Sequence record: KJ019095.1
DNA: 64,000 nt
Direction: 5' to 3' (one strand)
Positions 19,161-54,627 of this stretch are shown here, piece by piece. The notes beneath the pieces were generated by a model. It had not been told where the DNA came from and ran no database searches. It saw only the letters and a program-made list of their open reading frames with translations. Every line of letters starts with the position of its first letter. Position 1 is the stretch's first letter. A program made the translations under genes and the position numbers.

Positions 19161-19186
19161 ATAGTGATGTAGTTTTTAGGTATAAC

Positions 19187-34584: not shown

Positions 34585-35595
34585 ATGCATGTTGTGATGA
34601 AAGCTTTAATCTCTGGTATAACTGGGCAGGATGGATCCTATCTTGCTGAACTTCTACTGAAGAAGGGGTATGAAGTCCATGGTATTATTCGTAGAACCTC
34701 CTCGTTTAATACAGGAAGAATCGATCATATCTTCGATCAGTTACACCTCCACTACGGGGATTTGACTGACTCCCTGAACATAGTCTCTATCATTAAGGAA
34801 GTAGAACCTGATGAGATCTACAACCTAGGGGCACAGAGTCATGTGAAAGTATCTTTCGAGGAACCTGAATATACAGCACAGACTGATGCTCTGGGAACCC
34901 TAAGAGTATTGGAGGCAGTTCGTCTCCTAGGTATGACAGATAGGGTCCGTATCTACCAGGCATCCACCAGTGAGTTGTATGGGTTGGTACAAGAGACACC
35001 ACAGAAAGAAACAACACCTTTCTACCCACGATCTCCATATGGCGTAGCTAAACTCTATGGATATTGGATTATAAAGAACTACAGAGAGAGTTATGGGATG
35101 CACGCCAGTAGTGGTATTCTATTCAACCATGAGTCACCACGACGGGGTGAGACTTTCGTAACCCGTAAGATTACTAGGGGACTATCCCGTATTAGTACAG
35201 GACTACAGGATTGTCTATACCTAGGTAATCTAAACTCAAGACGAGATTGGGGTCATGCTGAAGACTATGTGGAGGCTATGTGGTTGATGTTACAACAGGA
35301 AACTCCTGATGACTATGTGATTGCCACAGGTAAAGAGTATTCAGTGAAGGACTTTGTAGAGGCATCTGCTGAATACTTTGGTATGAAGATTGAGTGGCAG
35401 GGTGAAGGATTGGATGAAGTGGGTATAGATAGATTTACAAAGAAGGTTGTCGTTCGTGTGAGTGACAAATACTTCAGACCAGCAGAGGTTGAAACTCTCT
35501 GGGGTGATCCCACTAAGGCTAAAGAGGTATTGGGTTGGAAACCTAATCATACCTTTGCTTCCCTAGTAGAAGATATGTGTATCTACGGTCAGTAA
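34585..35595 (+). CDS. gmd: GDP-mannose 4,6-dehydratase
   Basis: [36 protein letters not shown]. Confidence 0.96.
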
Positions 35596-35597
35596 TT

Positions 35598-36524
35598 ATG
35601 GAAAAAGGTGCAACGGTAGCAGTATTTGGTTCGGGTGGATTGGCTGGAAGTGCCATCACCAGGGCACTCAGGTGTTCTTTTGGGGGGTATAAGATTCTTA
35701 CTCCTAGGAGTAAAGAACTAGACCTAAGAGAACAAGCAGATGTTCGTAGTTGGTTTAAGCATAACAAAGTTGATTATGTATTCTTAGCTGCTGCCTTAGT
35801 TGGTGGTATCATGGCTAACAAGACTAGAAAGGCAGAGTTCTTACATGACAATCTAATGATGCAGTGTAATGTAATTGACTCTGCATACTATAGTGGAGTG
35901 AAGAAACTTCTATTCCTAGGTACTTCTTGTATCTATCCAGCAGGAAGGCACCATCCACTAGTGGAACATGAACTACTCACAGGACTATTAGAACCAACCA
36001 ATGACGCATACGCAATCGCAAAGATCGCAGGGATCAAACAATGTGACTTCTACCGAGAACAATATGGATTTGATGCTATCTCTATCATGCCTCCTAATCT
36101 ATATGGTCCTGGAGATAATTTCAATGAGGGATCAGGACATGTCCTCGCCTCATTGATGAATAGGTTTCACCTAGCGAAGGAAGCAGGTGCATCTAGAGTT
36201 GAATGTTGGGGTGATGGGACACCTATGAGGGAGTTCCTATATGTGGATGACTTAGCAGATGCTTCCTTATACTTTATGGATAGTTATAGTGAGTCTGGGC
36301 ACATTAATACTGGGACTGGTAGGGATGTAACTATCAAACAACTAGCGGAGACTATTGCTGATGTAGTTGGATACAAAGGTGAGATAGGTTGGGATACAAC
36401 TAAACCCAACGGAAACCCAAGGAAACTACTTGACAGCAGTAGGGCAAACCTGTTAGGATGGGAACCCAAGGTTAAATTTGAAGACGGAATCAAACTCACA
36501 TACAACTGGTATCTAGCACAATGA
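35598..36524 (+). CDS. fcl: GDP-L-fucose synthase family epimerase/reductase (Fcl/WcaG/ColC)
   Basis: GSGGLAG, AALVGGI, LGTSCIYP, YAIAK, PNLYGP. Confidence 0.93.
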   Translation: MEKGATVAVFGSGGLAGSAITRALRCSFGGYKILTPRSKELDLREQADVRSWFKHNKVDYVFLAAALVGGIMANKTRKAEFLHDNLMMQCNVIDSAYYSGVKKLLFLGTSCIYPAGRHHPLVEHELLTGLLEPTNDAYAIAKIAGIKQCDFYREQYGFDAISIMPPNLYGPGDNFNEGSGHVLASLMNRFHLAKEAGASRVECWGDGTPMREFLYVDDLADASLYFMDSYSESGHINTGTGRDVTIKQLAETIADVVGYKGEIGWDTTKPNGNPRKLLDSSRANLLGWEPKVKFEDGIKLTYNWYLAQ

Positions 36525-37714
36525 CAAAGATTACAAATGGATATACGTGGCCTCTTATGAAGGACACTGTGACCAAAAGAGATAGGTTGAGGATGGCAAA
36601 GTTTATCCTCACCAGTGATAGACTAACACAAGGTAAAGAAGTTCGTAAGTTTGAGGAGCAGTGGAGTGAGTGGCTTGGAGTTAAACATTCTCTTTTTGTT
36701 AGCAGTGGCAGTACCGCTAACCTACTTCTTGTGTCTGCTTGGAAGGAATTATACGAGATCCCAGACCAGTCGAAAGTAATTGTACCTGCTTGTACTTGGG
36801 TAACTAACGTTGCTCCTATTATCCAGTGTGGATTGACTCCAGTCTTTTGTGATATCAATCTAGAAGATTACTCTTTTGATTTGGATAAACTACAAGAACT
36901 ACGTGATGAATATCACGATGACATCAGAGGTATCTTTGTTACTCACCTCCTAGGATTTCCTGCTAATGTGGAAAAGTTTCGTGATGTTTTCCCCGACGCT
37001 CATATTCTAGAAGATGTATGTGAGAGTCACGGAGCAGTCCTCCCTAGTGGTGATAAGGCGGGAACCTTTGATGTTGGTGGCACATTTAGTTTCTACTTTG
37101 GGCACCACATGACTACCATTGAAGGTGGTATGGTGAGTACTAATGATCCAGAACTCTATGATCTAATGAGAATGAAGCGTTCTCATGGGTTAGCGAGAGA
37201 ATCACTATACTTTGAAACATACAAAGAGAAGTATCCTGATGTAAATCCACAGTTTCTCTTCGTTACTGAGGGATATAACTTCCGTAATACTGATCTAGCT
37301 GCTGTATTAGGACAGTCTCAACTGAAGAGACTAGACAGTATGATTGGGATTCGTAACAGGAACTATGAGTTATACCAACAATTACTAAAGAAACACGAAC
37401 ATGACCTTACACATGAGTATGGTGGTTCTTTCTATATCCCCTCCACACAGGGGGATGTAAGTAGTTTCTGTTTTCCATTTGTAGTTGATAATATGCACTG
37501 CTATCTTAAGTTAAAAGAACTTCTAGAAGAATACTATGTTGAGTATCGACCTATTGTGAGTGGTAACCTCCTACGACAACCATTCTTGAGAGAATATTCT
37601 GCTGAGTGTCCCAAGGCAGATATAGCCCATGAAAAGGGACTATATATTGGGAATAATCACTTTGTAGATGAGTCTAACTTTCACATGCTAGATGAGATTT
37701 TGAGCCAACTTTGA
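36521..37714 (+). CDS. DegT-fold PLP enzyme of ColD type (GDP-4-keto-6-deoxymannose 3-dehydratase-like)
   Basis: SSGSTAN, EDVCESHGA, SFYFGHHMTTIEGG with His at the usual Lys position. Confidence 0.85.
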   Translation: MTKITNGYTWPLMKDTVTKRDRLRMAKFILTSDRLTQGKEVRKFEEQWSEWLGVKHSLFVSSGSTANLLLVSAWKELYEIPDQSKVIVPACTWVTNVAPIIQCGLTPVFCDINLEDYSFDLDKLQELRDEYHDDIRGIFVTHLLGFPANVEKFRDVFPDAHILEDVCESHGAVLPSGDKAGTFDVGGTFSFYFGHHMTTIEGGMVSTNDPELYDLMRMKRSHGLARESLYFETYKEKYPDVNPQFLFVTEGYNFRNTDLAAVLGQSQLKRLDSMIGIRNRNYELYQQLLKKHEHDLTHEYGGSFYIPSTQGDVSSFCFPFVVDNMHCYLKLKELLEEYYVEYRPIVSGNLLRQPFLREYSAECPKADIAHEKGLYIGNNHFVDESNFHMLDEILSQL

Positions 37715-37715
37715 T

Positions 37716-38510
37716 ATGACATTTTCATTTAATCATATGGGCAACTTGGGGCATCTGGGAAACCAGATGTTTCAGTATGCCGCACTCATTGGTATGGGGG
37801 CTAAGCATGGGAGGAGTATTTGTATCCCCCATAAACAAAGTTTTGGGCAATCATACTACCAGGATCTTCGTAGTAATATCTACGATGCTTTCAACCTCTC
37901 ACCCAATGGTGTAGGTATCAGTAGGTTCCCCACAGTTCAGGAAGGTAGTTTCCACTTTGATGGAAACTTATTTGAGAACCCACCAGAGGAGAACTGTAAC
38001 CTCTATGGATTCTTCCAGAGTGAAAAGTGGTTCTCACATATTAAAGAAGGTATTAGGAAAGAGTTCACTCTAAAGGATGAGTACCGGGAAGTGGCACAAC
38101 TGATGAGAGAACAACTCTCTGGTCAGGTTGTTGCTATTCATGTTCGTAGAACTGACTACCTATCCAATCCAAACCACGGAGCATTGGGTTTAGATTACTA
38201 TGAGAAGGCACTGGAGTTGGTTCCTAATAACCTTACAGTAGTTGTATTCACTGATGATCCAGAGTGGGCTAAAGAACAACCACTCTTTCCAGATGATAGG
38301 TTCTTTGTATCAGAGACAGACTGTCCCTATACAGACCTTGCTCTTATGAGTATGTGTGATTATCATATTATTGCCAACAGTTCATACTCTTGGTGGGGTG
38401 CATACTTATCTGATAGTAAGAAAGTAATTGCTCCTAAACAGTGGTTTGGGGAACCACTTAAAACAAATAACCTGAAAGATCTTTATTGTGATGGGTGGGT
38501 GAAACTATGA
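37716..38510 (+). CDS. GT11 alpha-1,2-fucosyl/colitosyltransferase
   Basis: GHLGNQMFQYA, GFFQSE, HVRRTDY, NSSYSWWGAYL. Confidence 0.92.
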   Translation: MTFSFNHMGNLGHLGNQMFQYAALIGMGAKHGRSICIPHKQSFGQSYYQDLRSNIYDAFNLSPNGVGISRFPTVQEGSFHFDGNLFENPPEENCNLYGFFQSEKWFSHIKEGIRKEFTLKDEYREVAQLMREQLSGQVVAIHVRRTDYLSNPNHGALGLDYYEKALELVPNNLTVVVFTDDPEWAKEQPLFPDDRFFVSETDCPYTDLALMSMCDYHIIANSSYSWWGAYLSDSKKVIAPKQWFGEPLKTNNLKDLYCDGWVKL

Positions 38511-39130
38511 GTAACTTTGCAAGTGCTAAACAGTTTATCAAGAATGGTATTGATACACAACAGGAGTCTATCTCTGGTGGTGGCAGCACTATGGCTTCCA
38601 CAGTTGCCTTCAGATACTTCCTACCAAAGTATATCAAACAGTATGGTATTGAGAGTATCTTAGACATTGGGTGTGGTGACTGGCATTGGATGTCTACTAT
38701 CAGAGAAGAGTTTCCTGATGTAGACTATGAGGGATGGGATGCCTCTGAGGATATGATTAATCCCATGACTGAGAAGTATGGAACAGAGAATACCAGGTTT
38801 GAGGTAAAGGATATCATTGATAACAAGTATCCCAAAGTGGATTTGGTTATCGCTCGTGATGTTCTATTCCACCTCAAAGAAGATTACCTAAAGAAGGTTC
38901 TCAAGAATATCAGTAAGGCAGGTGTGAAGTATCTACTAGCAACTACCTTCCCAGGTTTACCTAAGAACGAAGAACTCACTCCTAAGAAATATGACGGTTG
39001 GGGATTCAGACCAATCAATCTGGATATCGAGCCTTATAATATGAAAGATTATTGTATCAATGATTTCAAGGAAACCACAGCCCCCAACAGGGGGTATCAT
39101 CGTCATGTGTATTTGTATGAGGTAAAATGA
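38507..39130 (+). CDS. class I SAM-dependent methyltransferase
   Basis: SGGGS, ILDIGCGD, DLVIARDVLFH. Confidence 0.85.
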   Translation: MSNFASAKQFIKNGIDTQQESISGGGSTMASTVAFRYFLPKYIKQYGIESILDIGCGDWHWMSTIREEFPDVDYEGWDASEDMINPMTEKYGTENTRFEVKDIIDNKYPKVDLVIARDVLFHLKEDYLKKVLKNISKAGVKYLLATTFPGLPKNEELTPKKYDGWGFRPINLDIEPYNMKDYCINDFKETTAPNRGYHRHVYLYEVK

Positions 39131-39279
39131 AGATCGAAATTGAACTCTCTAAAGATGTAGAATACAAAGGAGAGAAACTAGGTGAGTATATCTGGAACCT
39201 AGAAGAGGGAATTAATCATGTTACTGGTTTTGGTGATTCACTTGAGGAATGTTTTAAGGAAATTGTGAGGTTTAGATGA
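39127..39279 (+). CDS. 50-aa hypothetical protein
   Basis: Manual translation; ATGA overlaps at both ends. Confidence 0.6.
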   Translation: MKIEIELSKDVEYKGEKLGEYIWNLEEGINHVTGFGDSLEECFKEIVRFR

Positions 39280-40007
39280 AGAAAGTAGCTATTATCTTTA
39301 TTGGAACAGGTAGATACCTAGAGTTTCTACCAAAGTATTATGAACAGGCAGAAGCAAACCTCTTCCCTGACAGACCCAAACACTACTATGTGTTTACTGA
39401 TGGTGACTTAGGTAATGAACTACCTGACAATGTAACTGTATACGAACAGGAACATCTCCAATGGCCATACATCACCCTCTATCGTTTCGGTATTATCCAG
39501 AAACACCTAGAGGAGATTGAGAAGGAGTGTGGTTTCCTACTCTTTATGGATGCTGATACACAGGTAGTATCCCCTGTATCGTTCGATGAAGTATTCAGGA
39601 AGGGAAAACCCTATACAGGTGTTCATCACCCCTGCCACGCCCTGAATATGCCACCACACAATGAGTTTCCTGGTAGTCTAGAAACTAATACAGCATCCAA
39701 GGCAGCATGTAAACCTGGTGATGACTTCTCTGTATATTGGCAAGGTTGTGTATGGGGTGGAAACATAAAGGGTGCTCGTAAGATTATTGATACTCTCCAC
39801 CACAGAACTAAACAAGATGAGGAGAATGGAATCATTGCCAAGTGGCATGATGAAAGTCATATCAATAGATACTTCCTTGACAACAAAGATAAGGTGAATA
39901 CCCTATCACCTAGTTTCGCATACCCAGAGTCCTTCACTGAGTATATGGAAGACTACGAACCTAAGATTGTACACCTAGCAAAAGAGAATTCTAAGTATCA
40001 GGTATGA
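39276..40007 (+). CDS. GT6 (ABO-like) glycosyltransferase
   Basis: IGTGRY, YYVFTD, WPYITLYRF, DAD, HP, WHDESHIN. Confidence 0.92.
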   Translation: MKKVAIIFIGTGRYLEFLPKYYEQAEANLFPDRPKHYYVFTDGDLGNELPDNVTVYEQEHLQWPYITLYRFGIIQKHLEEIEKECGFLLFMDADTQVVSPVSFDEVFRKGKPYTGVHHPCHALNMPPHNEFPGSLETNTASKAACKPGDDFSVYWQGCVWGGNIKGARKIIDTLHHRTKQDEENGIIAKWHDESHINRYFLDNKDKVNTLSPSFAYPESFTEYMEDYEPKIVHLAKENSKYQV

Positions 40008-40627
40008 GTTACTTCACAGATTATGACAACGAATTCACAGTATTCGAGGCACCAAAGAACGGGGGAACTACTCTCCGTCTTTGGATATACTACGCAGGAA
40101 CAGGGGAGTTGGTGAAGTCAGCGGAGTCTGAATACTACGCTGGCACTGGAGAAACATACAAACAACTCCAAGAGTGGGGTTATGTGAATGGGGAATACGA
40201 GAACCCCAAGACCCAGATGGTATGTATCAAGAGAGACCCTGTAGATAGGTTTGTAAGTGCCTTCTATGATAAGGTAATCAAAGAGGGGAGAATCAAAGTA
40301 ACCATCGATGAGTTTCTCTCAAACTATGAAGAGATACTTGATAAGTCTACCCTCAAGATGAATGATGGTAAGACTAACTTCATGAAGTTTCACTTTGAGT
40401 CACAGACATATCACTTCGGTAAAGATAAAGATCTATATCATAAGGTCTTTGATATCTCAGAGGTTGGTACTGGTCTGAAGAAGTATCTGGAGGGTAAGTG
40501 GAATATAGAACTACCTGATGTCCATGCTAGAAATAGTGGTGGTGGTCGGAAGTTTGATCTCTCCAGGGGACAACTGAATAAGGTGAAGGAAATCTACACA
40601 CAGGACTATTATAATGGCTGGTACTGA
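40004..40627 (+). CDS. sulfotransferase family protein
   Basis: PKNGGTT (5'PSB), RDPVDRFVSAF (3'PB). Confidence 0.85.
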   Translation: MSYFTDYDNEFTVFEAPKNGGTTLRLWIYYAGTGELVKSAESEYYAGTGETYKQLQEWGYVNGEYENPKTQMVCIKRDPVDRFVSAFYDKVIKEGRIKVTIDEFLSNYEEILDKSTLKMNDGKTNFMKFHFESQTYHFGKDKDLYHKVFDISEVGTGLKKYLEGKWNIELPDVHARNSGGGRKFDLSRGQLNKVKEIYTQDYYNGWY

Positions 40628-41399
40628 AGGATATATCCTGATAGGTATTGGTGATAGGTATCTACAGATGACAGAGAACCTCACTAAAACTCTAAAGAAA
40701 CATGGAGATAATAGAGGATCCCTAACTATCACAAGATCGGATAATAGGGAACTCTATAGTGAGTGTAACACTGAGTTTGAGAGGAATGGAACTCTACCTA
40801 AGATTACCTTAGACAGATACTTACCTTTTGATCACAATATATTCCTAGATGCTGATATGTTATGTGTAGGTGATACACAACATGTATGGGATCTATTCAG
40901 GAGTAGTGATCAGTTTGTTCAACAGGTAGGATGTTTGGGAAGAGATCCTAACTTCCACGCTCACCAGTATGAGAGTGAGTTGGGTTTTGAGATTCCTAGA
41001 GTCCATGGTGGTTGTATCTACATCAATAGAGAGAAACTAGACCCAGGGTTCTTTCCCTATATGAGAGAGTGTTTCCTAAACTATAAACAAATATTTCATA
41101 ATAGTGGTCTAACCTATAAGAATAGTAGACCAGATCAACCACTATACGCTCTAGCAAATGGTATGTGGGGATTCAAACCTGTGGATCTATACACTAACCC
41201 TATCATGACTATTGTGAATGATAGTACCCCACCCCCACTAGATAGTGTGTTCTTCAATAAGAAGAGGGGTCCTAAGTTAGATACTCCTGTTCCCTTTGTT
41301 CATGTATTCCGTGGAGAAGAGGGTATGTCTAAGGGTTATACTAGAGGTGACCAGAAGATGTTGTTGTCCCATTATGATTACTACCTGAACTATGAATAA
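40614..41399 (+). CDS. GT-A fold glycosyltransferase (GT8-like)
   Basis: NIFLDADML, GG, DQP. Confidence 0.65.
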   Translation: MAGTEGYILIGIGDRYLQMTENLTKTLKKHGDNRGSLTITRSDNRELYSECNTEFERNGTLPKITLDRYLPFDHNIFLDADMLCVGDTQHVWDLFRSSDQFVQQVGCLGRDPNFHAHQYESELGFEIPRVHGGCIYINREKLDPGFFPYMRECFLNYKQIFHNSGLTYKNSRPDQPLYALANGMWGFKPVDLYTNPIMTIVNDSTPPPLDSVFFNKKRGPKLDTPVPFVHVFRGEEGMSKGYTRGDQKMLLSHYDYYLNYE

Positions 41400-42180
41400 A
41401 ACTATATGGATGTGTTGGTTCCAGGGTTGGGATAAGGCACCAGAGATTACAGAGAAGTGTTTAGAGTCCTGGAAACACTACAATAGTGATTGGGATATTG
41501 TTCTACTAGATGAATCCAACTACAAGGATTACATCTCCATTGATAAAGAACTACCAGGACTGAAGACAAACTATATCTCACTGGGTGATATCCTTCGTCT
41601 CTTTCTACTAAAAGAGCATGGTGGAGTATGGGCAGATGCAACTATCTTCTGCAACAAACCAGTGGATTGGGTTTTGGATTATGAGGATTCTTTCGTCTTC
41701 ACCAGGAAGGATAAGATGATTGCCTCTTGGTTTGTTGCTGCTCAGAAAGATTCCCATGTTGTAGATGTATGGTATAATAAGATGTTAGAGTTCTGGAAGT
41801 ATCGTATGGAAAATACAGATACTTTCGAGCAACAATATGGTTGGATACACGCTTTGTTCCGTCAGTCCTACGCTCAGGATAAGGGGTTCAGGGATATTGT
41901 AGATAGTATGGATAAGATTGATTGCATGAGTGATGGTCAATCTAGAGGTAAGGGTCCGCACTTCTTTGCACCCTACAGTAAATACTTCTACAACCCTATC
42001 AGTGACACGATAAAGAATCGTATAGACTCTAAAGTTGATCCACTATATAAGTTGTCTTACAAGGCAAACACAGACTGGAGAAGTCCAGAGAACAGGGGTA
42101 TCCACCCAGCAGACCAAAAGATTATGTTGGAATATCCAACTAATAGTGAACTACATTATCTACTCAACACATTAAAATGA
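41392..42180 (+). CDS. capsular polysaccharide synthesis-family (GT32-like) glycosyltransferase
   Basis: TIWMCWFQG, DILRLFLLKEHGGVWADAT. Confidence 0.85.
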   Translation: MNKTIWMCWFQGWDKAPEITEKCLESWKHYNSDWDIVLLDESNYKDYISIDKELPGLKTNYISLGDILRLFLLKEHGGVWADATIFCNKPVDWVLDYEDSFVFTRKDKMIASWFVAAQKDSHVVDVWYNKMLEFWKYRMENTDTFEQQYGWIHALFRQSYAQDKGFRDIVDSMDKIDCMSDGQSRGKGPHFFAPYSKYFYNPISDTIKNRIDSKVDPLYKLSYKANTDWRSPENRGIHPADQKIMLEYPTNSELHYLLNTLK

Positions 42181-43082
42181 CAAATAAATCATTGGTTACC
42201 GGTGGCGCGGGTTTCATCGGGTCACATATTGTGGACCGACTTATTACACTAGGACATCAAGTCGTAGTGATTGACAATGAATCCTCTGATGGTCATGATG
42301 AATACCATTGGAACAGAAGCGGACAAGTACAAAACCATAAGGCAGACATTCGTGACTACGATGCAATCAAACACTTGTTTGGTGGAGTCAATAATGTTTT
42401 TCACCTTGCCGCTAAAGCATCAGTACAGGCGTCAGTAGATAACCCCCTACCAACTATTGCCACACAGGTAATGGGAACCGCCAATGTATTGGAGGCAGCA
42501 CGACAATCTGGTGTGAGTAAGTTTGTATATTCCTCTACTAGTGCTTGTTATGGTAACAACAACCCCATTCCTAATGTAGAAACGATGAGAGAAGATCCTC
42601 TCAACGCCTATGCTATTGGTAAGTTATCTGGGGAACAACTAGTTCGTGCCTATCACTACCTCTATGGTATGAAGACGGTGGCATTCCGTTATACCAATGT
42701 ATATGGGGAGAGGGCAAGACATGTAGGACACTATGCTCCTGCTGTTAGTAAGTTCCTAAAGATGAGAGCACAGGGAGAACCCCTAACTATCTTTGGTGAT
42801 GGTGCCCAACGCCGGGACTTTATTCATGTATCTGATGTAGTCAACGCTAACTGCTGTATTACCTATGAGGAACTAGAGCAGTGGGGTGAGACCTATAACA
42901 TTGGTTATGGTAAGAACTGGAGTATCCAAGAGATCGCAGACTCTATCAGTCAGGAACAGATTCACCTATCTGCTCGTACTGGTGAGATGCGTGAGACCCT
43001 TGCTGATATTGGGAAGGCAAAGGCAGAGTTGATGTGGAAACCAAAGACTGACATCATGGATTGGATTAGGGTACAACTCTGA
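42177..43082 (+). CDS. NAD-dependent nucleotide-sugar epimerase/dehydratase
   Basis: VTGGAGFIGSH, YAIGK, RYTNVYG, RDFIHV. Confidence 0.93.
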   Translation: MTNKSLVTGGAGFIGSHIVDRLITLGHQVVVIDNESSDGHDEYHWNRSGQVQNHKADIRDYDAIKHLFGGVNNVFHLAAKASVQASVDNPLPTIATQVMGTANVLEAARQSGVSKFVYSSTSACYGNNNPIPNVETMREDPLNAYAIGKLSGEQLVRAYHYLYGMKTVAFRYTNVYGERARHVGHYAPAVSKFLKMRAQGEPLTIFGDGAQRRDFIHVSDVVNANCCITYEELEQWGETYNIGYGKNWSIQEIADSISQEQIHLSARTGEMRETLADIGKAKAELMWKPKTDIMDWIRVQL

Positions 43083-43699
43083 TGCCAGTATTTCAGAAGG
43101 ACAACAAGAAAGTTCTATTCATCCATGTTCCCAAGACTGCAGGAAGTTCTGTGAATAAACTCTTTGTGAATAATGGATATGAAATGTCCTACTATTCTGA
43201 GAGTTCTAAAGATCTATACAATGGATTATGTGGACCACAACATCTGGACTCACTTCTATTGGAAGATGAGTTCCAAGATTTCTCTCAGTTTGATTATATC
43301 TTCTCTATCTTCAGAGACCCAGTAGACAGACATCTATCTGAGTTCACCTGGGCACCCTGGGGACTAATGGGTAGAAACATCTACACACCAGAAAGATTTG
43401 ATGAGTGGTGTCCTAAGATATTCAGAGCGTATCAGGACTCACCATATAGGATGGATAATCACATTAGACCTCAACATGAGTTCTATGTCAATGGATGTGA
43501 TGTGTATGACTATGAAAATATCAATACACTCACAGAGAAACTATGTGATAAAATAGGTCTAGATAATAAAGAGATGCCATATGAAAGGTCTTCACGATAT
43601 GATAGTGAGGATTATGTCATCTATGAAGATACTTACAATTGTATTACTGAATTTTACAAAGGAGACTATCAATGGCAAAAGGATTCAGTCCTGTTGTGA
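43082..43699 (+). CDS. sulfotransferase family protein
   Basis: FIHVPKTAGSS, RDPVDR. Confidence 0.85.
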   Translation: MPVFQKDNKKVLFIHVPKTAGSSVNKLFVNNGYEMSYYSESSKDLYNGLCGPQHLDSLLLEDEFQDFSQFDYIFSIFRDPVDRHLSEFTWAPWGLMGRNIYTPERFDEWCPKIFRAYQDSPYRMDNHIRPQHEFYVNGCDVYDYENINTLTEKLCDKIGLDNKEMPYERSSRYDSEDYVIYEDTYNCITEFYKGDYQWQKDSVLL

Positions 43700-44550
43700 C
43701 TAAGGATAAGAACAAGTCCCAGTTCAAACTACAGGGTGTTCCTAGGATTTACTACATCAGTTTAGATGATCATGCTCATCGTCAAGACTATATGGAGTCC
43801 CAGTTTGAAGACTGGGGCATCACTAACTTCGAAAGAATCTCTGCTCATGATGGTAGAGGTGATAATGATCTGAGTGATATTCTCAAAGGATCTTATCCAA
43901 AGATGATGAGTTCTGGTGAGGTTGGTTGTGTAACCTCTCACCTAAAGGCACTAAAACACTGGTTAGATACTACAGAGGGTGAAGAGTTTCTCCTTATGAT
44001 GGAGGATGATTGTGATATCTCCACTGCTTCCCACTGGGGGTTCTCCTGGAGAGAGTTTGTTGGGAATATTCCATCCCATGTAGATTGTGTTCAGTTAGCA
44101 GTTATCAACCCATCAGAACTACATATCAAACTCCATATCAGGTTTGTGAATGATTTCTCCACTGCCTCATACCTAATCCGTAGATCACACGCAGAGAAGT
44201 TAGTTAGACTCTATTGTAGGGGTGATAAGTATAAACTTGATAGTGATATCAAACCCAGAGCAGTTGCTGATGATCTTATCTACAACTCTGGTGTGACTCT
44301 TGCTATGCCTCTATTTGCCTTCAAGATTGCACTAGGTTCCAGTATCCATGATGTCCATATCAATACCTTCCACAAGAGTAGTCATGATGGTATCTGGGAG
44401 TTTTGGAAGAAAACAGCACCAACTATTGAGAACTGGAAACCATTCTTCAACTATGATGCCTATCTGGGAACCCTACCACCCAATGTTGTGGTTCAACAAT
44501 GGCAGCAAAAACAGGAATCCAAAGCAAAAGATTCAGGGGCTTCGCAATAG
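43672..44550 (+). CDS. GT25 glycosyltransferase
   Basis: YYISLD...R, GEVGCVTSH, MEDD. Confidence 0.88.
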   Translation: MAKGFSPVVTKDKNKSQFKLQGVPRIYYISLDDHAHRQDYMESQFEDWGITNFERISAHDGRGDNDLSDILKGSYPKMMSSGEVGCVTSHLKALKHWLDTTEGEEFLLMMEDDCDISTASHWGFSWREFVGNIPSHVDCVQLAVINPSELHIKLHIRFVNDFSTASYLIRRSHAEKLVRLYCRGDKYKLDSDIKPRAVADDLIYNSGVTLAMPLFAFKIALGSSIHDVHINTFHKSSHDGIWEFWKKTAPTIENWKPFFNYDAYLGTLPPNVVVQQWQQKQESKAKDSGASQ

Positions 44551-45368: not shown

Positions 45369-45374
45369 TATTAG

Positions 45375-45402
45375 AAGGAGGGTTTGATACCCTCCTTTTT
45401 TT
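45375..45402 (+). terminator. intrinsic terminator
   Basis: AAGGAGGGT/ACCCTCCTT plus T-run. Confidence 0.8.
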
Positions 45403-45409: not shown

Positions 45410-45417
45410 TATAAATA
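45410..45417 (+). promoter_or_regulatory. T4-type late promoter
   Basis: TATAAATA upstream of the tail fibre gene. Confidence 0.8.
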
Positions 45418-45449: not shown

Positions 45450-47765
45450 ATGGCATTTAAGATTAATGGCGTAGTACGCATTGATAATAGTGGCAACGGT
45501 TTTCTGGGAATTGTAACCGCTACCGACGCTAATATCACAGGAGTTCTCACTGCCACTGAGGTGGATGCGAAAGTATCATCTAAGGCAATAACTGAACAAA
45601 CAGATGGAACCGTAGATGATGTAACTGGTGCAGATGAACTATTACTATTAGATGCCGAGACTGGTGGATTACTAAGAGTATCAATAGATGAGTTCGTGCA
45701 GGGTTCAGGCATTGGAACTCTAGTAACGGACTTTGATAACTTAACTGTTACTGGTATCACAACCGTTGCCACCCTCAAAGGTATTGGATCTAATAACATC
45801 AGTGTAGGGAGCACACTTTCCTTTGCTGATGGTACAGAGATCATCATGGGTGACTCTGGTGACTTCAGTATTCATCATGATGGTGACCATACTTACCTAG
45901 ATGAGACGGGGCAGGGTAATCTAAAACTCCGTACAAATAACTTTAGAGTAACAAATATAGCAGAAACAAAACCAGCTATTACAGCACAGGTTACTTCTGG
46001 TGTTGAGTTGTATTTTGATGGTAATAAGAAGATAGAAACTACAAATACTGGTGTTCTTGTGAGTGGTATGCTCACTGCTGATAGATTAAGATCAGGTGAT
46101 ATTGCTGCTAGAAATGTAATCACACTGGGTATTACCACTATCCAAGATCATTTGGAAGTGAATGATAGTACTGGTTCTGGTACGGAATATAATCTTAATG
46201 TTAAGACTAATGGTAGTTCTACCTTTGGTGTCTTAGGTAATGGAAATATTCTACTTGGAAACAGTTCCGGTGCTCCATTCATGGCGACGAATGATCACCA
46301 CGCAACTTCCAAGAAATATGTAGATGACGCCATCGCTGATGATCCTAGCGGTGCTGCGGCTTGGGGTACTGTTGCCTCAAACAACAGTGGTGGTGCTAGT
46401 AGTATTACTTTACTGGGTGGGATGAATGTAGCAAGTGTCACAGCTGGCACATCAAATGCAAAAGGAAATTTCGTGGTTACATTTGCCACTCCAATGCCTG
46501 ATGCAAACTATTCAGTAACCGCTAGTTATAATAACGCTAATGTTAACACATATGGGGATATTAGTGTAGGTTCTAAAACAGCAAGTAGTTTTGAGGTTCA
46601 AACTTTTGAATCATCAAATCTGCCTGACTGGCAGGGGTTTGGATTTGTCGTCTTCGCAACCAATGCCCTCCCACCAACAGGCGGCACCGGCACAGATAGC
46701 TGGGCAGCTGTAGATCAAACTATTGTTAATGGTGCTTGTAATGTACCGGCAAGTTTTAACGTTGCTTCAGTAACTAGAACTGGACTGGGCCTATATGACG
46801 TGGTGTTTACAACGCCGATGCCTACTGATAAATACAGCGTTGTGGGTAGCATTACCCGAGACACATTTTCTAATTTCTGTACTTCTAATAGGTCGGCTAC
46901 TGGCTTTACAGTAAAGAACACCTATCAGAATCGCGATAACGGTGCTACTCAGTATGCAGACAACCCCTTCTCCTTCACCGTCAACGCCACCAACGCAACG
47001 CTACCTGAAACTATTACAACGGATCAGTTTACCTCTGCGTTTAATGCTCCTACCTTCAAAAACATTCTCATCAATGGAAATCTGACAATTAATCAACGTA
47101 ATGTTAATATTACATCTGTTTCTGCCGGTGAATATGGTGAAGATCGTTGGAAAAAGACATTAGGTGGGATGACGCAGATTGTTGAAGATGGTAATTATCT
47201 ACCAAGTTCTTCTTACACTTTATCTGGAACAGGTATTACTACAACTACAGCAAACTCACCTGCTTCTGGTGACTGGGACATCTCAACAACCTTTGGTGAT
47301 ATTCCTATTACTGCTCGTTCTATCCAACTTGAATATGGCAACGTAGCCTCAGCGTTTGACTTGAGACCGGTTGGGGTGGAGCTGAGTTTGTGTCATCGTT
47401 ATTTTTATAGAATAATAAGGTCCGTCAACAGCACTCCTTTTACTATTAAATCTAACAGTAACTCAAACGACATTCCCGCTGTAGGCTCGATCGAGTGTTC
47501 TTACAGTGTAGTTTTTCCAGCCACAATGAGAACCCAACCTACTGGCTCAAATTACAGTAACAACGGAGCAAATAACTATTTGGCAATTCCAGGATATAGG
47601 GCTATTACTAACTCTTTTCTGGCAAGCGATGTAAGTTTTTCATACGCATCCTCTGAAGACGCAGTAATTTTAGTGGATACGACCTTAGGGAGCATCGGAG
47701 TAGTTCAAGGAGCTGCGTTCCCGCTAGAGGCGGCTTTTAGTTATGACATCGACGCCGAACTTTAA
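45450..47765 (+). CDS. tail fibre / receptor-binding protein
   Basis: Gly/Thr-rich; DHHATSKKYVD; two tandem VASV...F.TPMP..YSV modules; NILINGN.TINQR. Confidence 0.8.
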   Translation: MAFKINGVVRIDNSGNGFLGIVTATDANITGVLTATEVDAKVSSKAITEQTDGTVDDVTGADELLLLDAETGGLLRVSIDEFVQGSGIGTLVTDFDNLTVTGITTVATLKGIGSNNISVGSTLSFADGTEIIMGDSGDFSIHHDGDHTYLDETGQGNLKLRTNNFRVTNIAETKPAITAQVTSGVELYFDGNKKIETTNTGVLVSGMLTADRLRSGDIAARNVITLGITTIQDHLEVNDSTGSGTEYNLNVKTNGSSTFGVLGNGNILLGNSSGAPFMATNDHHATSKKYVDDAIADDPSGAAAWGTVASNNSGGASSITLLGGMNVASVTAGTSNAKGNFVVTFATPMPDANYSVTASYNNANVNTYGDISVGSKTASSFEVQTFESSNLPDWQGFGFVVFATNALPPTGGTGTDSWAAVDQTIVNGACNVPASFNVASVTRTGLGLYDVVFTTPMPTDKYSVVGSITRDTFSNFCTSNRSATGFTVKNTYQNRDNGATQYADNPFSFTVNATNATLPETITTDQFTSAFNAPTFKNILINGNLTINQRNVNITSVSAGEYGEDRWKKTLGGMTQIVEDGNYLPSSSYTLSGTGITTTTANSPASGDWDISTTFGDIPITARSIQLEYGNVASAFDLRPVGVELSLCHRYFYRIIRSVNSTPFTIKSNSNSNDIPAVGSIECSYSVVFPATMRTQPTGSNYSNNGANNYLAIPGYRAITNSFLASDVSFSYASSEDAVILVDTTLGSIGVVQGAAFPLEAAFSYDIDAEL

Positions 47766-48267: not shown

Positions 48268-49347
48268 ATGGCTTCAACACTTACACGCCGTCAAGGCGCA
48301 TCTATCTGGGATCAGTTTTGTTCCTGGGTCACATCAACCAACAATCGTCTTTACGTCGGTTGGTTCGGTGTTCTAATGATTCCTACATTGTTAGCCGCAA
48401 CTGTATGTTTCATTATCGCTTTCGTGGGTGCTCCCCCAGTGGACATCGACGGAATCCGTGAACCAGTAGCTGGTTCACTCATGTATGGAAACAACATCAT
48501 CTCTGGTGCAGTTGTTCCTAGTTCAAACGCAATCGGTTTACACTTCTACCCCATCTGGGAAGCTGCATCACTTGATGAATGGCTTTACAATGGTGGTCCT
48601 TTCCAACTAGTTGTCTTCCACTTCCTTATCGGTATCTACGCCTATATGGGACGTGAATGGGAACTCTCTTATCGTTTAGGTATGAGACCTTGGATCTGTG
48701 TAGCATACTCTGCACCAGTTGCAGCAGCTTCAGCAGTATTCCTAGTCTATCCTTTCGGTCAAGGTTCATTCTCAGACGCGATGCCCTTGGGTATCTCTGG
48801 AACATTCAACTACATGTTGGTCTTCCAAGCAGAACATAACATCTTGATGCACCCCTTCCACATGTTGGGAGTCGCAGGTGTCTTCGGTGGTTCATTGTTC
48901 TCAGCGATGCATGGTTCACTTGTTACCTCTTCACTTGTCCGTGAGACAACTGAAACTGAGTCACAGAACTATGGTTACAAGTTCGGTCAAGAAGAAGAGA
49001 CCTATAACATCGTGGCAGCCCATGGCTACTTCGGTCGTTTGATCTTCCAATACGCTTCATTCAACAACTCACGCTCACTCCACTTCTTCTTAGCCGCATG
49101 GCCAGTTGTGGGTATCTGGTTCACCGCACTTGGTGTTTCCACAATGGCATTCAACCTCAATGGTTTCAACTTCAACCAGTCTGTTATCGACGGACAAGGT
49201 AGAGTATTGAACACCTGGGCGGATGTTCTTAACAGAGCTGGTCTTGGGATGGAAGTAATGCATGAGAGAAATGCACACAACTTCCCACTAGATTTGGCAG
49301 CAGCTGAGTCCACACCAGTGGCTCTAATTGCACCATCTGTTGGTTGA
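48268..49347 (+). CDS. psbA: photosystem II D1 protein (Glu130 form, no intron)
   Basis: Full-length 359 aa; [13 protein letters not shown]. Confidence 0.99.
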
Positions 49348-49368
49348 TCACTCAACCTGTGGTATGAT

Positions 49369-49400
49369 AAAGGGGGACTTCGGTCCCCTTTCTTTTTCTT
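49369..49400 (+). terminator. psbA terminator
   Basis: GGGGAC-TTCG-GTCCCC plus T-run. Confidence 0.85.
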
Positions 49401-49417
49401 TTGTAATGTAAAGTTTT

Positions 49418-49648
49418 ATGTCTCACGATCTAATCGAATTGCTCACTTACTATGTGATCGGTGGTGCCCTTATCATAGGACCACCCGCTATCTTTCTCAT
49501 CATTGCTATGATGGCAGCACTCCAAAATACGAAAGGTCGCATGGTTGGATACAAAGATCACAAAACTTATGGTGATTCATCCATCTACGATCCGGCACCA
49601 AAATTGCCAGTAGATCAAACAAAATTCTTCTTGGAACTTAACAACTGA
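49418..49648 (+). CDS. hypothetical membrane protein
   Basis: ORF track; one TM segment. Confidence 0.7.
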   Translation: MSHDLIELLTYYVIGGALIIGPPAIFLIIAMMAALQNTKGRMVGYKDHKTYGDSSIYDPAPKLPVDQTKFFLELNN

Positions 49649-49659
49649 GGTAAACAAAA

Positions 49660-50715
49660 ATGACGACAAGTACACTTACAACACCACAAAGGGGGTGGTT
49701 TGATCTACTGGACGATTGGATCAAGAGAGATAGATTTATCTTTATTGGTTGGTCTGGACTTCTCCTTCTCCCCTGTGCATATCTCTCTATTGGCGGATGG
49801 CTCACTGGAACGACATTCGTAACTTCATGGTATACGCATGGACTCGCCTCCTCTTATTTGGAAGGTGCAAACTTCTTGACGGCGGCTGTCTCGACTCCTG
49901 CTGATGCTATGGGTCATTCTCTCCTTCTACTTTGGGGTCCTGAATCTCAGGGCGACTTCCAGCGGTGGCTCCAACTTGGAGGGCTTTGGTCATTTGTTGC
50001 TCTCCATGGTGCCTTCGCTCTAATTGGATTCATGCTTCGTCAGTTTGAACTGGCAAGACTCATTGGTATCCGTCCCTACAACGCTATTGCATTCAGTGGT
50101 CCTATCGCTGTATTTGTCAGTGTGTTTCTTCTATACCCACTAGGTCAATCTTCCTGGTTCTTTGCCCCCTCCTTTGGTGTGGCAGCAATCTTTAGATTCC
50201 TATTGTTTCTTCAGGGTTTCCACAACTGGACACTGAACCCCTTCCATATGATGGGAGTTGCTGGTATACTAGGTGGAGCACTACTATCTGCAATCCATGG
50301 CGTTACTGTTGAAAATACCCTATATGAAGATGGAGAACAGAACAACACCTTCACTGCGTTCGATTCCACGCAGGAGGAAGAGACCTATTCGATGGTTACT
50401 GCGAACCGCTTCTGGTCGCAAATCTTCGGGGTTGCGTTTAGTAATAAGCGTTGGCTTCACTTCTTTATGTTGTTTGTTCCTGTCATGGGTCTTTGGGTCT
50501 CAAGTATTGGGATCATTGGGCTTGCTCTTAATCTTCGTGCTTATGATTTTGTGAGCCAAGAGATTAGAGCAGCAGAAGATCCTGAGTTTGAAACTTTCTA
50601 CACAAAGAACATCCTTCTTAACGAAGGACTAAGAGCATGGATGGCACCTGTGGATCAACCACATGAGTCATTTGTATTCCCAGAAGAAGTTCTACCTAGA
50701 GGTAACGCATTGTGA
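49660..50715 (+). CDS. psbD: photosystem II D2 protein
   Basis: 351 aa; WLKR-like WIKRDRF...[10 protein letters not shown]. Confidence 0.99.
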
Positions 50716-50957
50716 TTAACGCACTCTTCACTTTTATATTTGCTGCGGTGATGTGGGTGCAAGTCCCACAGTGGCAGGATGATTGGTCTAAGTGCGCAGT
50801 AGATGTACCTGATGTTCAATGTCATTGGTATATCACAGCACCCGATAGCACCATGGGTGAAGGATTTAGTTGGGCGAATGCCCCTTGGTTCAGTGCTGAA
50901 GGTCTCCTTGATATTGGAGAACTTCACAACACAGTTCAATCACTTCAGGAGGCATGA
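50712..50957 (+). CDS. conserved cyanophage hypothetical protein
   Basis: ORF track; coupled to psbD. Confidence 0.75.
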
Positions 50958-51169
50958 TGAATATATTATTTTTAGTATTATACTTCGTCTGTTTCTGTCT
51001 CATTGCAGGTGGTGCCGCAGCTATGATGTATGCAAACATACAATCTATCTGGAACACACCACCCGCTCCACCTAAACCAATTCATCCTGAGGCACCTGTA
51101 GCAGGTGAAGAGGTTATGTATGTCGATCTAACAAGAGAAAAACTGGAAGATTTGTACCATGAACATTGA
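50954..51169 (+). CDS. hypothetical membrane protein
   Basis: ORF track. Confidence 0.7.
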   Translation: MMNILFLVLYFVCFCLIAGGAAAMMYANIQSIWNTPPAPPKPIHPEAPVAGEEVMYVDLTREKLEDLYHEH

Positions 51170-51281
51170 ATACCTTTTAGGTTGGGTTGCTATTCTTGTT
51201 TTGTTTATAGCAACACAGAATACTGATGATGACGATGATCCAGAAGGTGGTATGATGGTTCCTTCCACTCAATCTACATAA
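51159..51281 (+). CDS. 40-aa membrane peptide
   Basis: Manual translation ...TDDDDDPEGGMMVP... Confidence 0.6.
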   Translation: MNIEYLLGWVAILVLFIATQNTDDDDDPEGGMMVPSTQST

Positions 51282-51405
51282 CAAAACTACAAGGGGATTG
51301 CTAACAATCCTCTTTTTTTGTATCGTTATTTTGTTTGATTGTTATATATTGTGTGTATTTTCACACAAACCATATACATAGAGTGTAGAGCAAAGAGGAA
51401 GTATT

Positions 51406-51606
51406 ATGTTATCGCATAATCTTATTTCACATAACCAACTAGAAGGTTGGCGTGAATCTTTTCAGAAGATAGATAAATCTACCAATAGAACAACAGACGA
51501 ACTAAACCTAATTAATGATTACTATGATTGCTTAATAGAGTGTGATGATAACCAATCAGCATGTAAGCGTATCTGTAAACATGTATTGACATCTCCACCA
51601 ATTTAA
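51406..51606 (+). CDS. Cys-rich small protein
   Basis: YYDCLIEC...CKRIC; GAGG SD; followed by a terminator. Confidence 0.75.
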   Translation: MLSHNLISHNQLEGWRESFQKIDKSTNRTTDELNLINDYYDCLIECDDNQSACKRICKHVLTSPPI

Positions 51607-51645
51607 ATATGTTAGAATGGAGGGTATAACAACCCTCTTTTTTTT

Positions 51646-51813
51646 ATGCGATTCGATTTAACCATGGATGATTATGCCATCATCCTCAACGCATTACACT
51701 ATTATAAGAAAGTAGAGAAGCGTGGCAACTTCAAGCAGTATAATGAGGAGCGAGTTAACGATCTTAGGGACCGAATGGCCCACCAAATCGTCTGGGAACA
51801 GGGTGAAGAGTAG
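51646..51813 (+). CDS. 55-aa hypothetical protein
   Basis: Manual translation MRFDLTMDDYAIILNALHYYKK... Confidence 0.6.
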   Translation: MRFDLTMDDYAIILNALHYYKKVEKRGNFKQYNEERVNDLRDRMAHQIVWEQGEE

Positions 51814-51928
51814 CAAATACCACCATTTTCAGGAACCTCTCACCAAACCTTTGGGATACACTATGGGAAAACGGGTTGTTGATCGCCTATAATAAGGGGG
51901 TAGAACACAACTGGAGAGAAAATCCACT

Positions 51929-52693
<765 letters not shown>

Positions 52694-52763
52694 TCACTCA
52701 ACCTGTGATATGATAAAAGGGGACTTCGGTCCCCTTTCTTTTTCTTTTGTAATGTAAAGTTTT

Positions 52764-52994
52764 ATGTCTCACGATCTAATCGAATTGCTCACTTACTATG
52801 TGATCGGTGGTGCCCTTATCATAGGACCACCCGCTATCTTTCTCATCATTGCTATGATGGCAGCACTCCAAAATACGAAAGGTCGCATGGTTGGATACAA
52901 AGATCACAAAACTTATGGTGATTCATCCATCTACGATCCGGCACCAAAATTGCCAGTAGATCAAACAAAATTCTTCTTGGAACTTAACAACTGA
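52764..52994 (+). CDS. duplicate of 49418-49648
   Basis: Identical translation. Confidence 0.6.
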   Translation: MSHDLIELLTYYVIGGALIIGPPAIFLIIAMMAALQNTKGRMVGYKDHKTYGDSSIYDPAPKLPVDQTKFFLELNN

Positions 52995-53005
52995 GGTAAA
53001 CAAAA

Positions 53006-54061: not shown

Positions 54062-54303
54062 TTAACGCACTCTTCACTTTTATATTTGCTGCGGTGATGT
54101 GGGTGCAAGTCCCACAGTGGCAGGATGATTGGTCTAAGTGCGCAGTAGATGTACCTGATGTTCAATGTCATTGGTATATCACAGCACCCGATAGCACCAT
54201 GGGTGAAGGATTTAGTTGGGCGAATGCCCCTTGGTTCAGTGCTGAAGGTCTCCTTGATATTGGAGAACTTCACAACACAGTTCAATCACTTCAGGAGGCA
54301 TGA
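54058..54303 (+). CDS. duplicate of 50712-50957
   Basis: Identical translation. Confidence 0.6.
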
Positions 54304-54515: not shown

Positions 54516-54627
54516 ATACCTTTTAGGTTGGGTTGCTATTCTTGTTTTGTTTATAGCAACACAGAATACTGATGATGACGATGATCCAGAAGGTGGTATG
54601 ATGGTTCCTTCCACTCAATCTACATAA
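54505..54627 (+). CDS. duplicate of 51159-51281
   Basis: Same sequence at offset 3346. Confidence 0.5.
   Translation: MNIEYLLGWVAILVLFIATQNTDDDDDPEGGMMVPSTQST

Follow-up and report, generated by a model that had tools for sequence, protein, structure and literature searches.

What would a cyanophage build with a GT11 and a GT6 glycosyltransferase encoded almost side by side? The question is raised by positions 37,716 to 40,007 of the window analysed here, a stretch of 64,000 nucleotides from sequence record KJ019095.1, in which an initial annotation made from the letters alone had recognised a GT11 gene followed by a GT6 gene and had read them as an assembly line for an H-antigen-like and then an A/B-antigen-like structure. 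Around the two genes, a stretch of 8.6 kb matches isolate Syn7803US34 of Synechococcus phage ACG-2014f (KJ019095.1; Kyanoviridae, Atlauavirus) at 100% identity; other ACG-2014f genomes match it at 95-100% identity, and 45 records cover at least 80% of the query. GenBank KJ019095.1 already names the two genes "glycosyltransferase family 11" and "glycosyltransferase family 6". What we describe is therefore a known type of module in a genome where both of its members were already annotated, and no new kind of system is revealed. New here are the near-universal linkage of GT11 and GT6 in this phage clade; a colitose branch recognised by its ColD-like enzyme, a phage-encoded colitose route being undiscussed in the literature searched; and a conserved Q-G-C class of GT6 enzymes that stands apart from the P-SSM2/BoGT6a type.

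Cyanomyoviruses are among the most abundant marine viruses, and their lipopolysaccharide ("LPS") clusters are usually listed as generic glycosyltransferases with no product proposed. With the present analysis one such cluster becomes a concrete pathway, from guanosine diphosphate (GDP)-mannose to GDP-colitose or GDP-fucose, and from there through GT11 to GT6. We give even chances to the reading in which the phage encodes a glycan assembly line, with GT11 and GT6 as its conserved core, that works in the cytoplasm of infected Synechococcus, uses colitose for fucose, takes uridine diphosphate (UDP)-galactose (UDP-Gal) as the second donor and has a host envelope glycan as its likeliest target.

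Both genes are securely assigned. The GT11 start (37716) and the GT6 stop (40007) given by the initial annotation proved exact, and both translations lie above the thresholds of their Pfam families, GT11 with 97.9 bits on PF01531 Glyco_transf_11 (cut-off 23.9) and GT6 with 75.7 bits on PF03414 Glyco_transf_6 (gathering score 25). The GT11 translation contains H142-V-R-R-T-D and SSYSWWGAYL, that is, the HxRRxD and C-terminal S-x-S-W-W motifs of the family; a PDB sequence search with it gave spurious tetratricopeptide-repeat (TPR) matches only, and a solved GT11 structure was not found by sequence. For GT6, HMMER alignments to solved structures (BoGT6a and the human ABO transferase) place D92-A-D94 against N95-A-N97 of BoGT6a and the DVD of the human enzyme, Y154-W-Q-G-C-V-W-G-G against YYAGGLSGG (BoGT6a) and YYMGAFFGG (human B transferase, GTB), and the catalytic Glu193 of W190-H-D-E193-S against the WHDES of BoGT6a (Glu192) and of the ABO transferase (human Glu303). 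WHDES recurs in 119 of the 120 closest GT6 relatives. Structure prediction, which the initial annotation had suggested as a check, bears the assignment out: an AlphaFold model made with an alignment of 40 relatives reached a predicted local distance difference test (pLDDT) of 93.9 and a predicted template modelling score (pTM) of 0.91, and Foldseek returned BoGT6a as its top PDB match (E 6e-23, TM 0.87), followed by the human A and B transferases GTA and GTB (TM 0.80-0.86).

The alignments also confirm the reading YWQGCVWGG at the ABO specificity positions and the presence of a DXD motif (DAD), which the initial annotation had singled out, but the latter is a published hallmark of the cyanophage/marine GT6 clade (PMC3516806) and so no peculiarity of this gene. 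Clade 1 was explicitly defined to take in cyanophage and marine-metagenome GT6s (Thiyagarajan et al. 2012). The window GT6 is a member of this DXD clade and, like the others, has no C-terminal membrane-binding domain; metal dependence is predicted from the DXD. If the reading proposed here is confirmed, it would bear on the published idea that the vertebrate ABO family had an ancestor similar to the DXD-type phage/marine GT6s.

That the two genes belong together emerges from a survey of 83 loci that carry a GT6 of this type: 80 on viral contigs, chosen as the best among at least 582 matches, and three on metagenomic contigs. In 80 of the 83, GT11 is no more than about 2 kb away from GT6, abutting it upstream in 62 and downstream in 4, and the three loci without GT11 are truncated within 300 bp on the relevant side. 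S-PRM1, S-CAM9, Bellamy, B23 and DSL-LC03 have a GT11 (43-55% identical) directly 5' of the GT6 homologue, with overlapping stop and start codons; P-SSM2 has two genes between them. Of the 83 loci, 54 also have a GT25, which in 24 comes immediately after the two genes, and a QGC-type GT6 abuts GT11 in three unrelated bacterial metagenome-assembled genomes (MAGs; L097, L101 and L103). The view that GT11 and GT6 are one functional module, near-universal in this phage clade, is thus well supported. The "pair" of the initial annotation holds in this sense, but the genes are not adjacent here, a methyltransferase (MT) gene (38507-39130) and a 50-codon open reading frame (ORF; 39127-39279) lying between them. 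The MT is a variable insert between GT11 and GT6, found in relatives L011, L014 and L018 and not in L010, L012 or L015-L017; the 50-codon ORF occurs, among the fetched relatives, only in ACG-2014f itself (L013).

A host origin was sought by an exact-peptide-pattern scan of one genome for each of 185,579 species, which found 10 loci, none of them picocyanobacterial; divergent homologues could escape such patterns. The top match (L094, CAYPET010000046.1) is a 6.7-kb contig binned as a Chitinophagaceae MAG, with gmd-fcl-GT11-GT6 at 74/53/45/53% identity, and is probably a mis-binned cyanophage fragment.

Proposed pathway and target

From the observed gene identities, catalytic residues, fold and gene linkage we infer donors, the linkage formed, acceptor and target as follows. 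By homology, Gmd would convert host GDP-mannose to GDP-4-keto-6-deoxymannose, the ColD-like dehydratase would take off the 3-OH, and the Fcl-type epimerase/reductase would complete GDP-L-colitose, with some GDP-L-fucose possible. GT11 would add the L-deoxyhexose alpha-1,2 to a beta-galactoside, perhaps the product of GT25, and the DXD-type, presumably metal-dependent GT6 would add an alpha-1,3 hexose to the same galactose, likeliest galactose (Gal), with UDP-Gal as donor and the GalE-like epimerase as its possible source. The resulting branch would be like that of blood group B but with colitose replacing fucose, and the MT, the two sulfotransferases and three further glycosyltransferases could decorate or extend it. 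GT25 is a family of LPS beta-1,4-galactosyltransferases, which makes the GT25 of the cluster a candidate maker of the Gal acceptor. The likeliest target would be an LPS-type host envelope glycan, brought to the surface by host export machinery, and the altered surface of the infected cell might act, for example, against superinfection or against the loss of progeny by adsorption to debris.

A host envelope glycan is favoured because the cluster sits among host-takeover genes (hli, ferredoxin and psbA), because a strong terminator-like hairpin and a TATAAATA late-promoter-like motif come after hli and ferredoxin and directly before the tail-fibre gene, and because bacterial GT6, GT11 and GT25 enzymes act in LPS synthesis. 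Other results count against the main reading. Transmembrane segments were looked for in 14 cluster products and found in none; genes for an initiating transferase, a flippase, a polymerase or a ligase are absent from the cluster, so that surface export is an assumption; and a promoter scan gave no enrichment.

Glycosylation of virion proteins by phage-encoded glycosyltransferases is known in mycobacteriophages and chloroviruses, and the same enzymes might act in the cytoplasm on tail fibres or capsid and not on a host envelope glycan. All 14 products are soluble, lipid-carrier and export genes are absent, and a position just upstream of a tail-fibre gene is conserved, the clusters of the window, of S-CAM7 and of metagenomic relatives all having it. 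A virion target is thus a serious alternative, though we consider it less likely than a host glycan, because the hairpin and a separate late-promoter motif stand between the cluster and the tail-fibre gene, the cluster is embedded among the host-takeover genes, the tail fibre is without the collagen-like Gly-X-Y runs that a GT25-type enzyme might use, and cyanophage virion glycans are not reported in the literature searched. (The collagen-type idea had been suggested by the homology of GT25 to collagen galactosyltransferases, and was dropped once the neighbouring tail fibre had been checked.) Should the pathway be confirmed, the identity of the glycan would show how these phages alter the host surface or their own particles, as in superinfection exclusion, adsorption, and recognition by grazers or lectins.

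The deoxyhexose: colitose or fucose

The proposal of colitose hinges on the DegT-family protein encoded between fcl and GT11. In PDB its best match is ColD/WbdK of E. coli O55 (2gms), full length at 3.4e-51, ahead of the E1 dehydrase that acts on cytidine diphosphate (CDP)-sugars (4.9e-30) and perosamine synthase (3.7e-26). Its His195 (motif GHH) aligns with ColD His188, a position fixed by the H188N mutant entry 3b8x in the same PDB output and one where aminotransferases have the Schiff-base Lys, and is kept in 9 of 9 orthologous loci. The flanking genes, gmd and the Fcl-type gene, are GDP-sugar genes, and no [2Fe-2S] E1-type partner was found in the glycan cluster. So far the gene has gone under the names "hypothetical protein" or "aminotransferase" in ACG-2014f, and in S-CAM7 it has been taken for a CDP-sugar dehydrase. 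In the Fcl-type enzyme the catalytic Cys, Tyr-x3-Lys and His are aligned with those of 1bsv, and the score on the NCBIfam NF047922 Fcl equivalog is 420 bits, under the cut-off of 500; the sequence is compatible with a ColC-like role (colitose synthase), Fcl and ColC being indistinguishable by these data. Colitose is 3-deoxy-L-fucose, so that, on established pathway chemistry, a 3,5-epimerase/4-reductase of the Fcl type would turn what ColD makes into GDP-L-colitose. The Fcl-like enzyme could also yield GDP-fucose, and the sugar transferred may then be a mixture, which tells against a purely colitose-based reading. Both sugars are within the reach of the GT11 family, since two of its enzymes, human FUT2 and the WbgN of E. 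coli O55, use GDP-colitose and GDP-fucose (PMC11987014).

The arrangement recurs in S-CAM7 (KU686212.1), whose gmd-fcl-colD-GT11 block is 81/79/65/61% identical to that of the window, with the GT11 likewise following ColD, and which has no GT6. In S-CAM7 the block (10178-14481 of the fetched locus) is followed by a GT8-like gene, an adenylylsulfate kinase (supply of 3'-phosphoadenosine-5'-phosphosulfate, PAPS), a LicD-like gene and GT25; the kinase suggests sulfated glycans as a theme common to these clusters. Among the 83 loci, ColD (>60% identity) is confined to nine of the ACG-2014f-like lineage, and gmd-fcl-GT11-GT6 without ColD is found in 12-14 others, the simplest history being an ancestral fucose-type cassette into which ColD was later inserted between fcl and GT11.

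The GT6 carries no mark of that insertion. Its active site is identical in ColD-plus and ColD-minus lineages, a point against a colitose-specific line, and a search for ColD-plus-specific GT6 residues turned up four differing positions, none at a known substrate site, so that GT6 is without sign of adaptation to colitose. The colitosylated acceptor suggested by the initial annotation thus survives in part: ColD as best match, the diagnostic His and the use of GDP-colitose by GT11 enzymes speak for the sugar, but nothing suggests that GT6 is specialised for it. By contrast, the ColD-linked GT11s (ACG-2014f lineage and S-CAM7) have Phe71, Trp105, Tyr123, Ala185 and Leu248 in common, and in about 60 ColD-minus GT11s position 105 is invariably Tyr and position 185 nearly always Cys; these substitutions could be candidate donor-related positions or mere shared ancestry.

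The ColD-minus loci and the unchanged GT6 site would also suit a GT11 that uses fucose only, with colitose going to another glycosyltransferase of the cluster or remaining unused, and the pair making an ordinary H/B-type structure. This is improbable in our view: ColD lies directly between fcl and GT11 in 9 of 9 ColD-plus loci and in S-CAM7, it would drain the common pool of GDP-4-keto-6-deoxymannose, GT11 enzymes accept GDP-colitose, and the five residues of the ColD-linked GT11s, even if they reflect ancestry only, are not those of the ColD-minus enzymes. More tentatively, and with rather less confidence than an even bet would need, we propose that ACG-2014f-type cyanophages encode a complete route from host GDP-mannose to GDP-L-colitose (S-CAM7 sharing the first half) and build with it, via GT11 and a Q-G-C GT6, Gal-alpha-1,3-(Col-alpha-1,2)-Gal, methylated or sulfated, on infected cells or virions. 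If true, this would be the first virus-encoded 3,6-dideoxyhexose pathway; no link of colitose with cyanophages was found in the literature searched.

A further set of such genes was seen in a 642-kb uncultured phage (LR756502.1, 430000-452000, at about 6600-19900 of that segment), which has within 13 kb an Fcl-like gene (47%), a ColD-like gene with an HH motif (33%), a GT6 (29%), a second DegT-family gene and a GT11-like gene; the same components seem to have come together independently in this huge and unrelated phage.

Donor and acceptor of the GT6 enzyme

In GT6 enzymes a four-residue tetrad acts as donor switch, AGGL (BoGT6a) and LGGF (GTA) going with N-acetylgalactosamine (GalNAc), and MGAF (GTB) and HAAI (bovine alpha3GT) with Gal (PMC3516806; PMC4202792). 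The tetrad of the phage GT6 is Q156-G-C158-V159, which follows the Gal-type pattern in beginning with a long polar residue and having one bulkier than Gly in third place, and the prediction of a non-GalNAc donor that the initial annotation drew from Gln/Cys fits this published rule (PMC3516806). The residues that hold the galacto-sugar in BoGT6a (Thr70, Arg73, His190, Asp191 and Glu192) are kept as Thr67, Arg70, His191, Asp192 and Glu193. Because of the Gal-type tetrad and these retained contacts, the donor is most probably UDP-Gal, as in a GTB-like transferase, and the GalE-like epimerase of the same cluster counts in the same direction. The donor tetrad and the contact residues together predict a retaining enzyme that links Gal or GalNAc alpha-1,3 to a galactoside.

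The signature is widespread. Y-[WYF]-Q-[GA]-C-x-W-G-G is present in 117 of 117 readable motifs among the 120 closest database relatives (52-98% identity), and Q-G/A-C in 83 of the 150 best 50%-identity GT6 cluster representatives (72 DXD-type and 11 NXN-type), part of which are long multidomain proteins. Q-G-C is thus common across GT6 and no peculiarity of this phage, and its presence in so many diverse representatives argues for a mainstream donor. The constancy of Gln and Cys in the readable relatives points to a class distinct in specificity from that of P-SSM2, whose GT6 (PSSM2_268; the initial annotation was right that this phage has one) is 30% identical to that of the window, has the GalNAc-type tetrad AGGF and Ala at acceptor site A7, and is closer to BoGT6a and the ABO transferase than the window GT6 is; cyanophages would then have at least two GT6 specificity classes. 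The names of NXN-type GT6 clusters with Q-G-C, M-G-A and A-G-G tetrads were looked up and were "family 6 glucosyltransferase" or none, with no characterised enzyme such as WbnI among them; the tetrad-to-donor rule therefore rests on other tetrads and is uncalibrated for Q-G-C. Should the proposed pathway be confirmed, it would bring the first functional assignment for the large Q-G-C class.

A possibly novel donor was also envisaged in the initial annotation; UDP-glucose or another UDP-sugar, for example, would be new to GT6. The Q-G-C enzymes are known from sequence alone, as are these phage GT11s (a caution for the UDP-Gal reading as well), Cys120 and Cys158 occupy the equivalents of ABO specificity residues 235 and 268, and the PGAP name "family 6 glucosyltransferase" exists, though merely as a generic family label. 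We think such a donor improbable, and the suggestion of novelty did not hold up, since the phage enzyme keeps every residue with which BoGT6a touches O3, O4 and O6 of the galacto-sugar and the signature recurs in the 83 of 150 representatives. The PGAP name itself was rejected as a sign of a glucose donor: it belongs to NCBIfam NF041524, on which the window GT6 scores 174.2 bits, under the cut-off of 250, and the phage GT6 subclade lies beyond PGAP's trusted range for that model. Least probable of all is an A-type GT6 with UDP-GalNAc as donor, like BoGT6a, PaGT6 and probably the P-SSM2 enzyme with its AGGF tetrad, for although PaGT6, which alone among prokaryotic GT6s of the DXD type has been assayed, is a GalNAc transferase acting on H antigen, a long polar first and a larger-than-Gly third tetrad residue, as in Q-G-C-V, go with Gal in every known case, and the invariant Gln/Cys of the 117 readable relatives sets this class apart from the P-SSM2 type.

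For the acceptor, with sites numbered as defined for BoGT6a, the retained residues are His118 (site A1; Gln in alpha3GT), Tyr154, Trp190 and Glu193. Because A1 is His and A7 is not Trp, they suggest a 2-O-substituted (fucosylated-type) galactose. The rest of the pocket fits an H-type acceptor less well: A2 is Cys120 (Gly in GTA and BoGT6a, Ser in GTB, Trp in alpha3GT), A7 is His233 (Ala in GTA and GTB, Ile in BoGT6a, Trp in alpha3GT), His121 stands where BoGT6a has Phe125, and loop 1 has two short insertions. With a pocket so modified relative to the A/B synthases, the acceptor may differ from the classical H-type disaccharide.

Cluster layout and comparison with known systems

The two genes belong to a run of 13 glycan genes on the + strand (34597-44550, about 10 kb; Table 1), without intergenic gaps because the stop and start codons of consecutive genes overlap or abut. 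The GT8-like gene scored 0.97 in an ESM Atlas feature search, with 195 features common to "Glycosyl transferase family 8" clusters, and the 4-epimerase-like gene reaches 176 bits on the GalE equivalog, under the cut-off of 262. Marine RNA libraries contain short contigs 95-99% identical over ColD, GT11, MT, GT6 and the sulfotransferase-like gene, which are compatible with transcription in nature and would support it weakly, DNA carry-over being possible.

Table 1. Genes and signals of the glycan cluster, in window coordinates
Feature	Position	Strand	Evidence
gmd, GDP-mannose 4,6-dehydratase	34597..35595	+	NCBIfam TIGR01472 equivalog 554 bits (cut-off 415); Pfam PF16363 E 1.3e-151; GenBank coding-sequence (CDS) start 34597
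Fcl-type GDP-4-keto-6-deoxyhexose epimerase/4-reductase	35598..36524	+	PDB 1bsv (E. coli GDP-fucose synthetase) 3.9e-92; putative ColC role
ColD-like pyridoxal/pyridoxamine phosphate (PLP/PMP)-dependent GDP-4-keto-6-deoxy-D-mannose 3-dehydratase (DegT family)	36521..37714	+	PDB 2gms 3.4e-51, residues 24-382; PF01041 E 1.6e-60
GT11 alpha-1,2-(deoxy)hexosyltransferase, putative colitosyl/fucosyl role	37716..38510	+	264 aa; PF01531 E 8.6e-28
Class-I S-adenosylmethionine (SAM) methyltransferase (MT), putative sugar O-methylase	38507..39130	+	Methyltransf_12/25/31 E 1e-10 to 1e-8; phrog_3382
50-codon ORF, phrog_3687 (phrog of unknown function)	39127..39279	+	match 3.9e-39
GT6 retaining alpha-1,3-hexosyltransferase (predicted), minimal catalytic domain, DXD type	39276..40007	+	243 aa; PF03414 E 3.5e-21
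Sulfotransferase-like protein	40004..40627	+	PF03567 Sulfotransfer_2 E 1.3e-6, 29.2 bits (cut-off 22)
GT8-like putative glycosyltransferase (GT-A, DXD)	40614..41399	+	Pfam GT8 weak, E 0.017; FLDAD motif; model pLDDT 93.9
Caps_synth / Gly_transf_sug (GT32-like) glycosyltransferase	41392..42180	+	PF05704 E 4.3e-41; PF04488 E 1.6e-8
Short-chain dehydrogenase/reductase (SDR) UDP-hexose 4-epimerase-like (GalE-like)	42177..43082	+	PDB 4zrm (UDP-glucose 4-epimerase) 5.7e-50, then WbpP, WbgU
Second sulfotransferase	43082..43699	+	PF03567 E 5.8e-8; phrog_3347 "Galactose-3-O-sulfotransferase" 1.9e-99
GT25 glycosyltransferase	43672..44550	+	PF01755 E 2.5e-11
Terminator-like hairpin, 11-pair stem + T run	45373..45399	+	closes block of glycan genes, hli, ferredoxin
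TATAAATA late-promoter-like motif	45410-45417	+	5' of tail-fibre gene 45450-47765

Elsewhere in the window, positions 48658-51972 and 52004-55318 are two copies, in direct tandem repeat, of a segment of about 3.3 kb (spacing 3346 bp; most of the 36 mismatches fall in the psbA part) that spans the 3' part of psbA, a small ORF, psbD and small "carboxylesterase" ORFs; both copies are annotated in GenBank, and it could be a genuine photosystem-gene duplication or an assembly artefact of Syn7803US34. The gp43 DNA polymerase appears in GenBank as two CDSs (window 1-332 and 704-1873) with two small ORFs between them (329-702), which suggests a split or interrupted gene. ARAGORN places tRNA-Arg(TCT) at 6385-6458 and tRNA-Asn(GTT) at 6672-6743, where the GenBank record has no feature. 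Two large genes are annotated "cytitidyltransferase" (11209-13887, 892 aa; 16430-17644, 404 aa), a phage sigma-70-type RpoD gene lies at 15721-16413, and a collagen-repeat scan picked out nine successive Gly-Gly-Ser triplets at 60522-60602 (frame 3, + strand).

Among known systems, the cluster of the T4-like cyanophage P-SSM2 (GT11, PSSM2_265; GT6, PSSM2_268), where both genes have been annotated as such for years, shares the order GT11, one or two small genes, GT6, epimerase, GT25, hli and ferredoxin. The GT11s are 42% and the GT25s 60% identical, and both GT6s are minimal enzymes of the DXD type. It differs in the GT6 identity and tetrad given above, its Ala at A7 being that of human GTA and GTB; in having no ColD, so that its sugar is presumably fucose; and in the genes between and after GT11 and GT6, which are not homologous to those of the window (neither the MT nor the sulfotransferase-like gene proved homologous to its positional counterpart in P-SSM2).

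The closest match to the proposed mechanism is found in E. coli O86, in which WbwK, a GT11 alpha-1,2-fucosyltransferase, makes Fuc-alpha-1,2-Gal and WbnI, a GT6 alpha-1,3-galactosyltransferase, adds Gal to give a blood-group-B-like epitope (PMC4202792). The comparison is one of activities. Unlike the phage genes, those of O86 belong to a bacterial O-antigen cluster that has lipid-carrier and export machinery of its own, and the sugar used is fucose, not colitose. For the deoxyhexose branch the parallel is E. coli O55, which has a ColD (WbdK) with His for Lys adjoining gmd, and a GT11, WbgN, that transfers colitose from GDP-colitose alpha-1,2. There is no GT6 step in O55, the phage cluster is without genes for GDP-mannose synthesis, and the phage ColD-like protein, though aligned over its full length, is only distantly related to the O55 enzyme.

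With BoGT6a (PDB 4ayl, 4cj8) and human GTA/GTB the phage GT6 shares the fold (TM 0.87 and about 0.85), the WHDES Glu, Trp190, Tyr154, His118 and the Gal-binding residues. Bacterial GT6s are typically of the metal-independent NXN type (PMC4202792), and BoGT6a is one of these, with a C-terminal membrane-binding domain, UDP-GalNAc as donor and the tetrad AGGL, in contrast to the DXD, the missing membrane-binding domain, the QGCV tetrad, Cys120, His233 and the two loop 1 insertions of the phage enzyme. Of the same DXD type as the phage enzyme are PaGT6 of Parachlamydia acanthamoebae and the marine-metagenome DXD clade, which are minimal catalytic domains with DXD and metal dependence; PaGT6 is a metal-dependent GalNAc transferase that acts on the H antigen (Thiyagarajan et al. 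2012), whereas the Q-G-C subclade, known by sequence, would on its tetrad add Gal.

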